Source of the DNA: Ascoidea asiatica JCM 7603
Lineage: Eukaryota; Fungi; Ascomycota
Assembly (NCBI GenBank): GCA_001600695.1
Contig: BCKQ01000012.1
Span: 577,514 to 582,944, forward strand
Direction of reading: 5' to 3'
Length of the DNA: 5,431 bases
A program made the position numbers and the translations under genes. Shown here piece by piece: positions 1 through 5,431 of this stretch (position 1 is the first letter of the stretch; the number at the start of each line of letters is the position of its first letter). The notes beneath the pieces were generated by a model, which ran no database searches, was not told where the DNA came from, and was given only the letters and a program-made list of their open reading frames with translations.

Positions 1-71
1 TTCTTTACAGAAAAATATATTTATTTTATATATATTAATTACCTCAATTATTTATTTAATATATAATTACA
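1..71 (+). repeat. 71-bp exact terminal direct repeat, copy 1 (LTR sequence; probably assembly overlap)
   Basis: 1-71 is identical to 5361-5431 (ttctttacag...ataattaca). Confidence 0.97.
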
Positions 72-88
72 AGTTATTAAATTTATTA
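1..88 (+). repeat. 3' end (U5 side) of the 5' LTR, ending ...TTATTA
   Basis: 1-71 matches the downstream LTR. 80-88 AATTTATTA is an 8/9 inverted repeat of the LTR start TAATAACTT (4928-4936) and abuts the PBS at 89. The exact end (88, alternatively 79 or 71) is inferred. Confidence 0.75.
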
Positions 89-111
89 GATTTCCAATCT
101 TTGCTTTCCAC
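89..111 (+). promoter_or_regulatory. Primer-binding site complementary to the 5' half of tRNA-Ser(IGA)
   Basis: GATTTCCAATCTTT (89-102) is the reverse complement of AAAGAUU[I]GAAAUC, tRNA-Ser(AGA) nt 27-40 as recalled for S. cerevisiae. GCTTTCCAC (103-111) extends the pairing into the D-arm. It lies between the LTR end and the gag ATG. Confidence 0.8.
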
Positions 112-112
112 A

Positions 113-895
113 ATGTTTATGTTTCCTGATGGTTTTGACATTGGCCATGAAGACTTTAAAGAAATTGTTGCTCAAGTTCAATTAATTAAAATTGATAAAT
201 ATTCTACTGGTACTGATTATCCTTTATTCAAGAAATGGTTTATTAAGAAGCTTTCTTATTACGTTGATTTTGGTGGTGATGATTTAAATTCTTTTTCTAA
301 TGCAAATGGTGTTAATCGTTCTCCTCGGAGACTTGCTGGTGTTGTTGAAGCTCTTATCAAAGTTGGTTATAATGCTTCTTTTTTTAAAGATTATGATGAT
401 GAAAACGGTATTTAAATTTTGATTAAGCTTAATGTTAAATATGCTGTTCTTGGTAACTTTGATAAAATTAAATTGTTAAGAAGCTTTATTAATCCAAATG
501 TTGTTGCTTCTTCTGATAAAGACTTTAAGAAGCAGATTAAACTTATTGTTGCTCATTTCCCTGTCTTTGCTTCGATTGCTCCTTATGTTGCTCTTTTGAA
601 GTTGAATGGTAAATCTACTGCAAAATATTTGAGAAATAACAAATTCTCTGGTAATGCTTGTGATGTTGTTGCTGCTTTAGAATCTAAAACTATTGGTGAT
701 ATTTTTAGAGATATTCGTGAATTAAGAGATGGAGGTTTAATTGATACTGATGATAAAAATGATATTATTAATGATGATTCTGATGAACTTAATTTGATGC
801 TTAGCAAAAACAAATTCTTCAATTGTGGTGCTTATGGGCATTTCTCTAAGAAGTGCAAGAAACCAAAGAAATTCAAAAAGTTTGAACATGTTTAG
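113..895 (+). pseudogene. gag: Gag region (capsid plus nucleocapsid with degenerate CCHC knuckle)
   Basis: Position after the PBS; F-F-N-C-G-A-Y-G-H-F-S-K-K-C at 815-856 is Cx2Cx4Hx4C with the first Cys as Phe (TTC), followed by basic KKPKKFKK; internal TAA at 413. Confidence 0.85.
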
Positions 896-1312
896 CTTAT
901 TGAAGTTCCTGATGATTATGCTGTTTCAATTGATAAAAATGATGTTGCTTCTGATACTGATGAAATCAATCTTGTTTTACATGAATTTGATATTCGTCCT
1001 TCTAATTCTACTGATGCTGCTCTTGCTGTTTCTAAGGTTGGTGAACCCTGTCCCTTGGTACCTAGACCGGCCTCATATAGAAGTGATCTGAAATTTGAGG
1101 ATGCTATGCTTGAACATCAGACCTCATCTTTTGGTGAGCTACATGCAGTAGCTGAAGGCTGCAAAGTCCATTGTGATGTGCTTAAGTCGGAGACTGAGAT
1201 GAGAATGAAAGCGACAGTAATGCCTGACCCACCAAATGGGGGCGAATCTCTGATGATCAAAGGCCCACTTAATACTGGTTTATCAATCTTGCAAATTCAA
1301 GAAGAAGTGAAT

Positions 1313-1690
1313 CTAGTAGATTCCTCTTCCAATGCAAACTTTTTCTTAGATACTGGTGCTTCAACTCATGTTGTCAACTTAATCGAGTTGCTTGCACACC
1401 AAAGAGAATCAAACACTTTGGTGAAAGGAATCAATGGACGAGAGATATGCAAAACTGAAGGTACTGTTAAAATTGGATGTCTTCAACTCAATGATGTGAA
1501 GTTGTTACCCAATGCTCCTAGAAATATCATTTCCATGGGAAAGCTAGCAGAAAGCGGTTACAAAATTGAAATTAAAGACAAATTGTGTTCAATTTATCAT
1601 CAAGAGAAGCTTATATTTGAAACAGTTATGCAAAACTATTTGTGGCATTTGGACCCTAATGATGTTTGTACTGAAATGGTGTTTAATGCT
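1313..1690 (+). other. Aspartic protease domain of Pol
   Basis: FFLDTGASTHVV (catalytic Asp 1349-1351), VKGING flap, G-T-V, LNDVKLLP, NIISMGKL. Boundaries are approximate. Confidence 0.92.
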
Positions 1691-1714
1691 GATACTTCTA
1701 CACCTACTGATTGA

Positions 1715-2602
1715 GGTGCTCAAACTGCTGTTTGCGATGAAATTCTTCAATTTCACAAAAACAACGGACATTGCTCATTTAACGAATTCAAGTGGTTAAA
1801 TCAATCTGCTGAAGTCAAATACCTCGATAATGACATTCATGCTGCTTTGAAGAGATGTGAAGCTTATGTTTCAATTGTACCTAAAAGTACAATTAGAAAG
1901 TCAAAAGAAGCTAAACACTTGGTTACTGGTGAATATATCGTTGCTGATCTAATTGGTCCCATTAACAACTCTTATGGATTGATTGTAACTGAAGCTAATT
2001 CGCACTTTCTTGTTGCTCATGTTCTTACTTCTAAGTCTCAAGCTACTGACAAACTAATTGAATCTCTCAGGATTTTCGAGAAGTTGCTTTCCTTGACCAA
2101 CAAATCACTTTGTTTTGTGAAAACTGATAATGAGTTCAAAACAAATGCATTCAAAGCATTTTGTTCTGCAAATGGTTTTATTCATGATGCGACTGCTCCT
2201 TATTCTTCTTATCAGAATGGAAAGTCTGAAAACATGAATCGTCAAATACAACACAAGTTGAAACAGTTGCTTGCTGATTCTAATATTCCTGATACTTATT
2301 GGAATTTTGCTTTCCATCATGCTGTTTTTCTTCACAATTACTTGCCCTTGAATTTAAATGGAAAATCTCCTTGGGAGATGCTCAGAGAAATCAAGAAAAC
2401 TGTTACTGTTACTGCTCCCTTTGGATGTCGTATCTATGGCTTTAACCATCATAGTGTCAGGCAAAAGGTTTTCAAGAAAGACGTTTCTGGAACGTTCTTT
2501 GGCTTCAATAAAACTAATACGATTGCTTTTATTCTAGAAGATGGCACTGGTAAAATAGTCAGATCCAGTTCATTTAGGTGCTTAACTGATGTTTATCCAT
2601 TC
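1715..2602 (+). other. Integrase: zinc-binding, catalytic core and SH3-like region
   Basis: H 1754, H 1769, C 1856, Y 1865 (expected C). D 1946 (ADLIGP), D 2126 (KTDNEF), E 2228 (QNGKSE). Also YWNFAFHHAVFLHN, SPWE, PFGC. Confidence 0.93.
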
Positions 2603-3241
2603 AAGTTAAACAATTATGTTGTTGTTACTGACACTGATGTCCAACCAATTTCTTTTGGTGGTTCTTCGGCTTCTTTCTCAGCTGCTTCTAATATTGATTC
2701 TAACACTTCTGCTACTGAAAATACTGTTGAAGTTAGACCTTCTAGCCATGATGCTGCTGATATTGATATGACTGATAACAATGAAAGTCAACAAACTCAA
2801 GAAGATACTCAAGATGTTTCTCTTGATGAAACTAGTGCTCCACCTGAAATGCAGGAGGATTGCTTAAATGACGCGTCCAATTGCAATATTTCAAGTGATT
2901 CACTTCAATCTGCTGTTGAATCAACTACTCCTTCTATTATCGAATCTACTCCATCTTTAATTTCCAATTCTGTTGTTATTACTCCTCGGAGAAGAAATAG
3001 GTTTCGCATTGCAAAAGCTTCTAATCGAGTTTACAAGATGAAACTAAGACCCAAAAGACATGTTTCGTTGCAAATGAAAGATATCCTCAATTTGCTTTCA
3101 AACAGCAGTAATGTTTCAGATCCTGTTATTCAACTCCCTGATGAAGATGCATCTGACCACAAAGCTGATTCTCAAAAAGCTATTGAAGGTCCAAAAGATG
3201 TTGTTTCTATGTCTGAAAACGCTTCTGATAATGAAATCAAT
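2603..3241 (+). other. Low-complexity Ser/Thr/Asp-rich integrase C-terminal linker with basic NLS-like block
   Basis: Acidic, Ser-rich translation with a central PRRRNRFRIAKASNRVYKMKLRPKRH (2984-3061). Confidence 0.7.
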
Positions 3242-4317
3242 CTTCTTGTTTCCAAATCAAAATACAAGATTCCTAACTACTTTTCAGAAGTGTTACAATC
3301 ACCTGAAAAGAACAAATGGTTACAAAGCATTGAGAAAGAGATGAACTCCATTCGTTCTAACAATGTGTATGATTCAGTAAAAAAGAATGATGTTGAGAAA
3401 GCTATCATCAAAGGCAGATGGGTTTTCAATGTTAAACAAGAAACAGATAACTCAGAGCGTTTTAAAGCTAGATTAGTCGCCAAAGGTTATTTGCAACACC
3501 TTGGTGAAAACCTCATCGATATCTATGCTCCAGTGATGAAGTGTGATACTTTAAGATTGATCTTGTCCTTAGCTGCAATTAAAGGTTATTCTTTGTGCCA
3601 AATGGATGCTAAAACTGCTTTTCTCAATGGAAAGATAGATTATCCTGTTTTCTTTCAACTTCCTGCAGGAACTGGTACTCCTTCAGAATATGTCTGGAAA
3701 CTCAAGAAAGGACTTTATGGACTAAAACAAGCTCCTCACATCTGGTTTAATACAATTAGAAAGGTGGTAATGAAAAGTGGTGATTTTGAACAAAGTGTGC
3801 TAGATCCTTGTTTGTTTTACAACAAAACCTGTTACATCTCAATCTACGTTGATGATATTCTCATTGCAGGTGCTACTTCTTCTGATATCAAAGTTGCAAA
3901 AGATTTACTCAATGATGCTTTGGTGATGAAAGATATGGGTTCTCCTGCTGTGTTCCTTGGAATTAACATCAATAAGATTTCAAATGGATACTCCATCTCG
4001 TTAAAGGACTTATAACCAAAATCGAAAATGATTTTGAAGTTAAAAAGCTCAAAGAGCTCAGAACTCCACTAGCTAAAGGTTTTGAACCAGCTGAATCTTC
4101 TTCCAAACTTCTAACTGAAGAAGAACATTCAAAATACCGATCAGGCATTGGAACTCTCTTGTTCCTGGCTAACACTGTTAGACCTGATATATCATTTGCT
4201 ACTTCAATGCTAAGTCGATATCTCGTTACTCCCAGAAAATCTCATTTGAGTGCTGCTTTCAGGATATTGCAGTATGTTGTTCAAAGAAAGAACTTCTCTT
4301 TAACTTATGTTGCAGAT
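3242..4317 (+). other. Reverse transcriptase domain (copia-type), frameshifted near 4010
   Basis: KWLQSIEKEMNSI, GRWVF, FKARLVAKGY, QMDAKTAFLNG, LKKGLYGLKQAPHIW, YVDD (3845-3856), KDMG, RPDISF. Confidence 0.96.
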
Positions 4318-4401
4318 TAGAACCACATCAAATATGCTGATTTCCGTTACATGGATAAAAGTGACAATGCTAAGATTCAAGACTATCCCAAACAAACAGC
4401 T

Positions 4402-4863
4402 TTCAAATTAACTGTTGTTAGTAATTCTGACTTTGCAAGCGATAAACGAACCAGCCACAGTCAAAGTGGCTATTTCACATTATTGAATGGAAATATCATT
4501 TCATGGTCTTCTAGAAAACAATTGTTGATTGCTCTCTCGTCAACTGAAGCCGAATATATTTGACTTACTGAAGCGATGAAAAGTGGATTGTACTTCAAGA
4601 ATGTTTTAGCTAACGTCAAATTCAACTGTTCCTTTATCAACCTTCTTGGTGATAATCTCTCTTCTTTAACTCTTGCTGCTCATCCTTATATTCACAACAA
4701 GTGTAAGCACATTGATATCAAATATCATTTCATTAGACATAATGTTACAAGTAAGTTGATAAAACTTAACTATGTTAACACTAAGATGAATACTGCAGAC
4801 ATGCTTACCAAGCTCGTTGATACAACTACATTAGAAAGCTTGCTTCAATCTGTTTTTCATTAA
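4402..4863 (+). other. Ty1/copia RNase H domain, disrupted
   Basis: VSNSDFASD (first catalytic Asp appears as Asn, AAT 4423-4425), SQSGY, ISWSSRKQ, SSTEAEYI*, GDNLSS, KHIDIKYHFIR, NTADMLTK. Confidence 0.94.
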
Positions 4864-4918: not shown

Positions 4919-4927
4919 GAAGGGGAC
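4919..4927 (+). promoter_or_regulatory. Polypurine tract (plus-strand primer)
   Basis: GAAGGGGA(C), preceded by a T-run (TTTTTT), 55 nt after the pol stop and immediately before TAATAACTT. Confidence 0.85.
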
Positions 4928-5431
4928 TAATAACTTATTGATCTATTTCATCAATTACTTGCTTCAGTTTAGCATTGCTTTCTGCTTAAATTACTTCTGT
5001 TTTACTTAGGACTGTTAACACACAATTACCTGTTTTCTGTTTTTCTCTTTCTTTTACTGTTACCTAACCCTAATATTTATCATGTGCCAGGGCTCAACTA
5101 TGACCGATCTAATTATTTGCATTATTTGGTTTTTCTCAGATCACCTGTTTGCGTGGTCACCTGGTTGGCACGGGGGATGCAAATGCTTTTTGTTTTTCGT
5201 CCAATGAAAAACTTTGCACTTGCTCATTTACTTTGGCAATTGTTCGCTCAATTGCAATCTGCTGCTGTTTTCAAACTTCTTTCCAGGTTTGCTAATCTAA
5301 ATTAAATAGCTTTCTTTTCCTGTTTTATTTTCTTTTTCTCTTTTATATTTTTCTTTTTCTTTCTTTACAGAAAAATATATTTATTTTATATATATTAATT
5401 ACCTCAATTATTTATTTAATATATAATTACA
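4928..5431 (+). repeat. 3' LTR (truncated by window end; full LTR about 521 bp when joined to 72-88)
   Basis: Starts directly after the PPT; non-coding and T-rich; last 71 nt identical to the window start; terminal inverted repeat TAATAA...TTATTA. Confidence 0.85.
5361..5431 (+). repeat. 71-bp exact terminal direct repeat, copy 2
   Basis: Identical to 1-71. Confidence 0.97.

Follow-up and report, generated by a model that had tools for sequence, protein, structure and literature searches.

Probable priming of a budding-yeast copia-type retrotransposon by half of an inosine-edited serine tRNA

How does a retrotransposon begin reverse transcription when the bases behind its long terminal repeat (LTR) offer no partner to the 3′ end of any tRNA? 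This question is raised by a window of 5,431 nucleotides (the whole stretch of DNA that was analysed; contig BCKQ01000012.1, positions 577,514 to 582,944, here G000:C12:577514-582944) from the AT-rich, 20.3-Mb, 71-contig assembly of Ascoidea asiatica JCM 7603. The window holds most of one LTR retrotransposon, its first 71 bases (1-71) recurring at 5361-5431, and this element is a decayed Ty1/copia-type element of budding yeast. From position 89, where the sequence behind the LTR begins, to the gag ATG at 113 there is no TGG; pairing with a tRNA 3′ end is thus impossible in this interval, and 3′-end priming by any tRNA was rejected. We conclude that the primer site is most probably positions 89-102, paired with nucleotides (nt) 27-40 of cytoplasmic tRNA-Ser(AGA), and that priming would proceed from half of a tRNA molecule edited to inosine at position 34 (I34).

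The place of the site depends on the LTR boundary, which the host genome fixes exactly. Window positions 1-88 (plus strand) are the U5-side 3′ end of the 5′ LTR, as defined by alignment of the LTR pair and by six solo LTRs of the same family; the latter all end in ...TTTATTA and then diverge into unrelated DNA, placing the LTR end at position 88, and six full copies of the family continue past this point with GATTTCCAATCTTTGCTTTCCACAATG. Window 89-111 reads GATTTCCAATCTTTGCTTTCCAC, followed by a single A and then the gag ATG. Its first 14 bases, GATTTCCAATCTTT (89-102, plus strand), constitute the putative core primer binding site, the complement of nt 40-27 of the host tRNA-Ser(AGA/IGA): 13 of 14 positions are complementary to the gene, and the sole exception is C95 (plus strand), which faces tRNA nt 34; the gene has A at this nucleotide, and mature eukaryotic A34 tRNAs have inosine. 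The partner of G89 is C40, the putative 3′ end of the primer. Fourteen bases, against a threshold of at least 12, thus match a tRNA anticodon stem-loop from the first base after the LTR. The preliminary description of this DNA had placed the site directly after an LTR ending at 88, noted the lack of a TGG-type site and paired 89-102 with nt 40-27 of tRNA-Ser(AGA) with C95 as the only mismatch; the solo LTRs, the bases up to the ATG and the host's 11 gene copies agree with it on each point, and the AAAGA/UCUUU anticodon stem that it presupposed is present in the host tRNA.

A genome search with AAAGATTNGAAATC, which carries N at the nt-34 position, returned 27 matches, compared with 0 for a reversed-pattern control. 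The 11 matches with A at N are the tRNA-Ser(AGA) genes, reading ...GTGGTTAAGGCG-AAAGATTAGAAATC-TTTT... with GGCG directly before AAAGATTAGAAATC, and the matches with T or C (TGA and CGA forms) are ordinary non-tRNA DNA. Counting both strands, the 20.3-Mb genome contains the 14-mer with G at this position nine times, each time next to a copia LTR (seven copies of the window family and two of a second family), with zero background matches. A chance match of the 14-mer to tRNA-Ser is excluded in practice.

We compared the site with 71 distinct tRNA sequences taken from loci in the genome, a set in which initiator Met, Asn, His, Pro and Tyr are absent. The best match was tRNA-Ser(AGA), at 13 of 14 positions, and the second was the anticodon arm of tRNA-Cys(GCA), at 11 of 12. 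In duplex folding across five lineages, with I34 modelled as G and the primer 3′ end fixed opposite position 89, the Ser duplex was the more stable in five of five even with an unedited A34, and far more so with I34 as G. If the primer were instead one half of tRNA-Cys(GCA), with nt 29-40 of the anticodon arm (AGAUUGCAAAUC) lying on 89-100 and G34 opposite C95, C95 would be accounted for without inosine. Such a primer is second best in this partial host set (11 of 12 over 89-100, or 12 of 14 with A88 counted), and its duplex with 85-112 reaches -22.7 kcal/mol, close to the -23.9 kcal/mol of unedited Ser. We nevertheless consider it very unlikely, given that it requires a C:C mismatch (at nt 35) in mid-helix to be conserved across all lineages, loses 101-102, and is weaker in all five lineages once the end is fixed at 89 (core duplex -8.7, versus -10.6 for Ser with A34 or -17.2 with I34). 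When the adjoining extension is included, in the four lineages that carry it, the Cys values are -13.8 to -19.5 versus -20.8 to -31.3 for Ser; a Cys half also leaves unexplained a relative, L111, whose site is a perfect match to tRNA-Ser(UGA). A better match to another tRNA 3′ end, which would have told against the preliminary description, does not exist, since none can pair, and the best rival, the Cys arm, is weaker in every lineage.

Other candidates were rejected on similar inspection. Both tRNA-Cys(GCA) and tRNA-Phe(GAA) come near unedited Ser when the LTR end is included in the fold, and rank lower as soon as the end is set at 89 or their register is examined. Host versions of tRNA-Ser(UGA) and tRNA-Ser(CGA) carry C32 and differ from what the window requires at 2-3 positions. 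No complement to an initiator-Met or Arg(UCU) half is present, the initiator part being judged from a sequence other than the host's own.

We next asked how far the site is conserved, comparing seven lineages, with about 20 further full-length relatives (P0190-P0208) outside the comparison. The same 14-mer, always with C, stands at the LTR end or presumed LTR end in six lineages, comprising two host families and four metagenome lineages whose proteins are only ~30-60% identical and whose LTRs are unrelated. The second host family (C21, C18) has an integrase 41% identical to that of the window and an unrelated LTR whose end was verified against its own 3′ LTR; there the 14-mer directly follows ...TTTTAATA. 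In the metagenome contigs L082/L113, L085, L086 and L114, found by protein searches, it follows ...ACA or ...ATA shortly upstream of gag. Gag identity among these contigs is 32-62% (32% for L114 versus L085), and L085 encodes one intact 1401-residue open reading frame (ORF). Across the window, L082, L085 and L086, the primer site is invariant at 14 of 14 positions, compared with 7 of 50 third codon positions and 8 of 40 last LTR bases. Conservation of 89-102 in other copies, anticipated by the preliminary description, thus extends to distant relatives, and this cross-lineage conservation is the strongest evidence, as judged from sequence, that these bases would act as a primer site. The closest named relative protein comes from Saccharomycopsis crataegensis, whose element L080 has TGTTG-type LTRs and in which no Ser site was found; L110 (P0051) showed none in the 135 bases present upstream of its ATG; and a metagenome protein scan recovered only distant copia elements (25-38% identity), none with a Ser site.

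What, then, explains C rather than T opposite nt 34? Inosine pairs with C. With the serine D arm as search key, the host yielded 11 AGA, 6 UGA, 1 CGA and 6 GCU serine tRNA genes and no tRNA-Ser(GGA) gene, so that no gene in the genome encodes G at nt 34 there. C is present opposite nt 34 in nine of nine host copies and in five of six metagenome contigs with an AGA-type site, and T was never seen. Because the host has no GGA serine tRNA gene, C is kept in six lineages and T never appears, inosine is the natural reading of C95, and the earlier proposal that the site matches the modified rather than the genomic tRNA is supported on these same grounds. Deamination of A34 to I34 in A34 tRNAs is universal in eukaryotes (PMC10275265).

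The site might still bind tRNA-Ser(AGA) with C95 as a tolerated A:C mismatch, or be primed by an unedited precursor, and so hold no record of inosine. The A34 duplex is, after all, still the best of all tRNAs tested, inosine in this host is a prediction, and one contig with A shows that the site can vary. We regard this explanation as unlikely: six lineages retain C although only 14-20% of their neutral sites are invariant; T, which pairs with A34, is absent from every site, all 11 genomic matches to the T version being the tRNA genes themselves; and the lineage with a UGA-type site has A there, Watson-Crick to U34, which places the position under pairing selection. The universality of A34-to-I34 editing (PMC10275265) and the publication of the same logic for plant Bianca elements (PMC6317226) also stand against it.

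Pairing with a serine tRNA receives a separate line of evidence from L111/L112, the seventh lineage (gag 30% identical), in which ...TTTTTTACA is followed by GATTTCAAGTCTTT at the position of the site. The complement of this sequence, AAAGACTTGAAATC, is a perfect match to nt 27-40 of the host tRNA-Ser(UGA) with the intron after nt 37 removed, and the two changed bases lie opposite C32 and U34, the only differences between the two serine tRNAs in this region. The site therefore co-varies with the serine isoacceptor, and two changes that follow the tRNA in this way are difficult to account for other than by pairing of the site with a serine tRNA in the 27-40 register. Likewise, A for U34 in one lineage and C for I34 in the others indicate that the base opposite nt 34 is under pairing selection. 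On comparison with the tRNA of A. asiatica, the L111 site appears to fit the spliced form of tRNA-Ser(UGA); no UGA-type site was found in the host genome. As an observation on the tRNA genes themselves, the host tRNA-Ser(UGA) genes (L107:347-457, G000:C7:464646-464756) carry an intron of ~30 bases after nt 37, and the tRNA-Ser(GCU) genes apparently bear introns too.

Downstream of the core lies an optional extension, GCTTTCCAC (103-111, plus strand), which by duplex folding could pair with C25-A21 and G19-G15 of tRNA-Ser. In the folded model, 103-107 pair with C25-A21 and 108-111 with G19, G18, U16 and G15, with G26 and U20/U20a bulged out, and the extension adds about -11 kcal/mol to the duplex. 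For the window, its energy is reached by 1% of random AT-rich 10-mers, and for L086 by 0.1%; when the extension bases themselves are shuffled, the proportion is 1-18%. In the window, L082, L085 and L086, 7 of 10 bases before the ATG are invariant, compared with 14-20% at neutral sites, and the variable columns are 103, which faces the G26/C25 bulge (G/C/A/C), 105, where T and C can each pair with G23, and 112, outside the helix; read after the fact, this pattern fits pairing. The extension is kept in four lineages and missing from family 2, L114 and L111, and 104-112 directly precede the gag ATG in a CCACAATG context that could also serve translation. We therefore consider the extension a real but optional, lineage-specific addition, with the case for its tRNA pairing about evenly balanced: folding reproduces the pairing model of the preliminary description, but the extension is kept in one subclade only, missing as it is from three Ser-primed lineages. 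In family 2 (L078:671-740, L079) the gag ATG stands ~45 bases farther from the primer site, and the stretch just before this ATG, AAAACTTGCTGCTCATG, aligns loosely with AATCTTTGCTTTCCACAATG of the window, a hint of an old duplication or insertion.

These 14-24 conserved bases could in principle be a signal of another kind, for self-priming (as in Tf1), packaging, dimerisation or translation start, with the likeness to tRNA-Ser coincidental. The position of 104-112 before the ATG, as above, means that part of the conservation could serve translation. Self-priming finds no footing in the LTRs searched: no complement of at least 8 bases exists in the LTRs of the window family, L085, L082 or L086, and the single 8-base match, in family 2, is an A/T run outside the 14-mer. 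The transcript 5′ end complementary to the primer site that Tf1-type priming calls for is absent from them, and we rejected this mode. More generally, the site reproduces the form of a serine anticodon arm exactly, in the expected register and next to the LTR; in L111 it has changed to fit a different serine isoacceptor; and its core is kept though the distance to the ATG varies from 10 to ~50 bases. A non-tRNA signal thus seems to us highly improbable.

These features suggest how priming by a serine tRNA half would work, although cleavage, inosine, the modified bases and priming itself are steps that we infer. Element RNA at 89-102 would pair with the anticodon stem and loop (nt 27-40) of tRNA-Ser(AGA). 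Because reverse transcriptase (RT) needs a paired 3′-OH next to the last LTR base, the primer would be a 5′ tRNA fragment cut after C40, that is, nt 1-40 severed in the 3′ strand of the anticodon stem by analogy with copia and Ty5, and DNA synthesis would start opposite A88. The core ends at A27, and the next base, G26, presumably N2,N2-dimethylguanosine (m2,2G) as in Saccharomyces cerevisiae tRNA-Ser, where it blocks pairing and reverse transcription, would bound the copyable part of the primer much as 1-methyladenosine 58 (m1A58) bounds the 18-base site of retroviruses. When the primer is copied during plus-strand synthesis, I34 would be read as G, yielding C. Since I34 both pairs with C and is copied as G, C95 would be expected in place of T, and it would suit both the first annealing and the later strand transfer. 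In the window's subclade, the D arm and D loop of this fragment may pair with a further 8-9 bases (104-111).

A broader proposal, which we advance tentatively and hold to be somewhat less probable than its converse, is that a yeast copia clade primes on serine tRNA halves, its sites being a genomic record of the mature tRNA: C for I34, a core that stops at m2,2G26, an extension that skips two dihydrouridines, and in one lineage a match to spliced tRNA-Ser(UGA), with switches between Ser(IGA) and Ser(UGA) that keep the 27-40 register. A switch at fixed register would mean that serine tRNAs as such, or their anticodon arm, are recognised when the primer is cleaved or selected.

Several points weigh against serine half-tRNA priming as proposed here. 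The LTR ends of the metagenome lineages were read from ...ACA or ...ATA rather than from a second LTR, and their sites were compared with the tRNAs of A. asiatica rather than with those of the contigs' own organisms. L109, a contig of the L086 family at 1.7x coverage, reads GATTTCAAATCTTT at 441-454, with A opposite nt 34, a form intermediate between the IGA-type and UGA-type sites; this A may be an error, decay, an I:A pair or a real intermediate. The tRNA set used to judge rivals is incomplete in the five species named above. The modified bases m2,2G26, dihydrouridines D20 and D20a, and N6-isopentenyladenosine 37 (i6A37) are assumed from S. cerevisiae tRNA-Ser rather than taken from this host. 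Finally, all host copies are coding-dead, and current activity is unlikely.

The remainder of the window has the layout of a copia element, with gag, protease, integrase and RT in that order between the LTRs and a purine tract before the 3′ LTR. The gag-pol of Ty1/copia type spans 113-4863 (plus strand; ORF list and Pfam, with zinc knuckle, protease barrel, integrase region and RVT_2). Pfam matches comprise a weak zinc knuckle at 419-892 (E = 7.8e-4; 19.9 bits, just below the 20.8-bit cut-off), Pol_BBD (beta-barrel, protease) at 1055-1711 and the RVT_2 reverse transcriptase (PF07727, E = 3.2e-52) at 1847-4012. No rve domain was detected in the window by Pfam; an integrase-like region at 1847 to ~2600 was recognised by alignment to family 2, which bears an SH3_retrovirus domain. 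In-frame stops at 415, 895, 1714, 4318 and 4561, together with a frame break near 4015, disrupt the reading frame, so that this copy is dead. In-frame stops of all three kinds occur in host copies and in L082 (window 413-415, 893-895, 1712-1714, 4316-4318 and 4559-4561; L082:271-273); L113, a second copy of the L082 family, has GAG in place of the TAG of L082, and P0013 (1401 residues, L085) and P0014 (1453 residues, L086) are single long open gag-pol frames.

The polypurine tract GAAGGGGAC (4919-4927, plus strand), the plus-strand primer site, adjoins the 3′ LTR, as read from sequence and LTR alignment. The 3′ LTR (4928-5431, plus strand; LTR pair alignment) begins TAATAAC... directly after the purine tract GAAGGGGA and is truncated by 17 bases where contig C12 ends. 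The complete 5′ LTR begins at G000:C12:576508, 1006 bases upstream of the window; at 1094 bp (L074:209-1302, G000:C12:576508-577601) it is ~570 bp longer than the ~521-bp 3′ LTR form, owing to an extra block at ~L074:582-1112. The two LTRs are 94-97% identical where aligned, which makes the insertion old. LTR termini are TAATAA...TTATTA in the window (4928-4933, 83-88) and ...ATA/...TTA in family 2 (L078:663-670) and L114 (47-54), and the usual ...ACA in L082, L085, L086 and L111. One host copy, L008 (G000:C13:441027 onward), has lost the primer site and gag through an internal deletion that joins the LTR end plus GATT to sequence matching window ~1185 onward. L085:1-1646 contains a pol-like ORF (1-924), then a purine tract GAGGGGAAG, then an LTR that doubles as the 5′ LTR of the next element; L085 thus represents tandem elements with one common LTR.

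Known half-tRNA systems offer partial parallels. Ty5 and Ty5-like yeast elements (Hemivirus, Pseudoviridae) resemble the window in being Ty1/copia-type yeast elements without a TGG-type site, whereas here the tRNA would be Ser(IGA), or Ser(UGA) in one relative, and the LTR ends in TTA, not CAACA. The RT-RNase H region of P0013 (L085) is ~39% identical to a Saccharomycodes ludwigii protein, its only named yeast match, which is presumably from a Ty5-like element. In Ty1, whose primer is an intact initiator tRNA used from its 3′ end, the D and T arms of that tRNA form additional pairs with the template RNA downstream of the primer site; the extra pairing proposed here would instead run on directly from the core and involve, of the half tRNA, the D arm alone. 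In Drosophila copia, a ~39-nt 5′ fragment of initiator tRNA-Met was found on cDNA (Kikuchi 1986, as cited in PMC10275265). Copia, an insect element that uses initiator tRNA-Met, is the only case in which the primer has been physically shown; the predicted end in our element (nt 40) lies at a similar point in the tRNA. In Candida albicans, Tca2 (pCal) and the gamma/whio LTR families are also primed by an internal region of a non-initiator tRNA, with complementarity described as 'extensive' or short (PMC4139406), which parallels the core-plus-extension and core-only forms seen here; Tca2, however, uses tRNA-Arg(UCU), which has no inosine position. The plant Ty1/copia element Bianca comes closest in principle, its primer site being complementary to half of a tRNA-Ile with A34 edited to inosine (Neumann et al., PMC6317226), so that pairing is with the tRNA as edited rather than as encoded; Bianca differs in belonging to a plant lineage, in using tRNA-Ile and in having no reported D-arm extension, and the proteins described here are ~30-37% identical to plant copia.

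Our full-text literature search (tRNA-Ser with primer site, copia, anticodon) found no description of a Ser half-tRNA primer. A review of C. albicans elements lists seven primer-site classes, with Ser in none (PMC4139406); according to a 2025 preprint, Ty5 alone of the yeast elements has the half-tRNA site; the profile issued by ICTV, the international committee for virus taxonomy, takes use of a short segment of tRNA as the defining feature of Hemivirus and gives the Pseudoviridae primer as 'usually initiator tRNA-Met'; and the S. schoenii and S. fibuligera genome papers contain no primer-site analysis. A serine primer, the yeast clade itself, the switch between isoacceptors and the extension to the D arm appear to be new. 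The novelty suggested by the preliminary description is narrowed in one respect, as the principle of a site that fits an edited half tRNA is known from the tRNA-Ile of Bianca (PMC6317226).

Half-tRNA priming in yeast has so far been tied to initiator tRNA-Met (Ty5 and kin) and tRNA-Arg(UCU) (Tca2). A clade on serine tRNA, with its long variable arm and inosine wobble, would make primer choice in Pseudoviridae more plastic than the ICTV summary suggests. We know of no account of the step that selects and cuts the primer, even for copia and Ty5, and an isoacceptor switch at fixed register would be a natural experiment on what carries it out. C opposite nt 34 would represent a second, independent case after Bianca of primer sites evolving to fit a modified tRNA; where sites do so, annotation pipelines that match tRNA genes alone will miss such elements.
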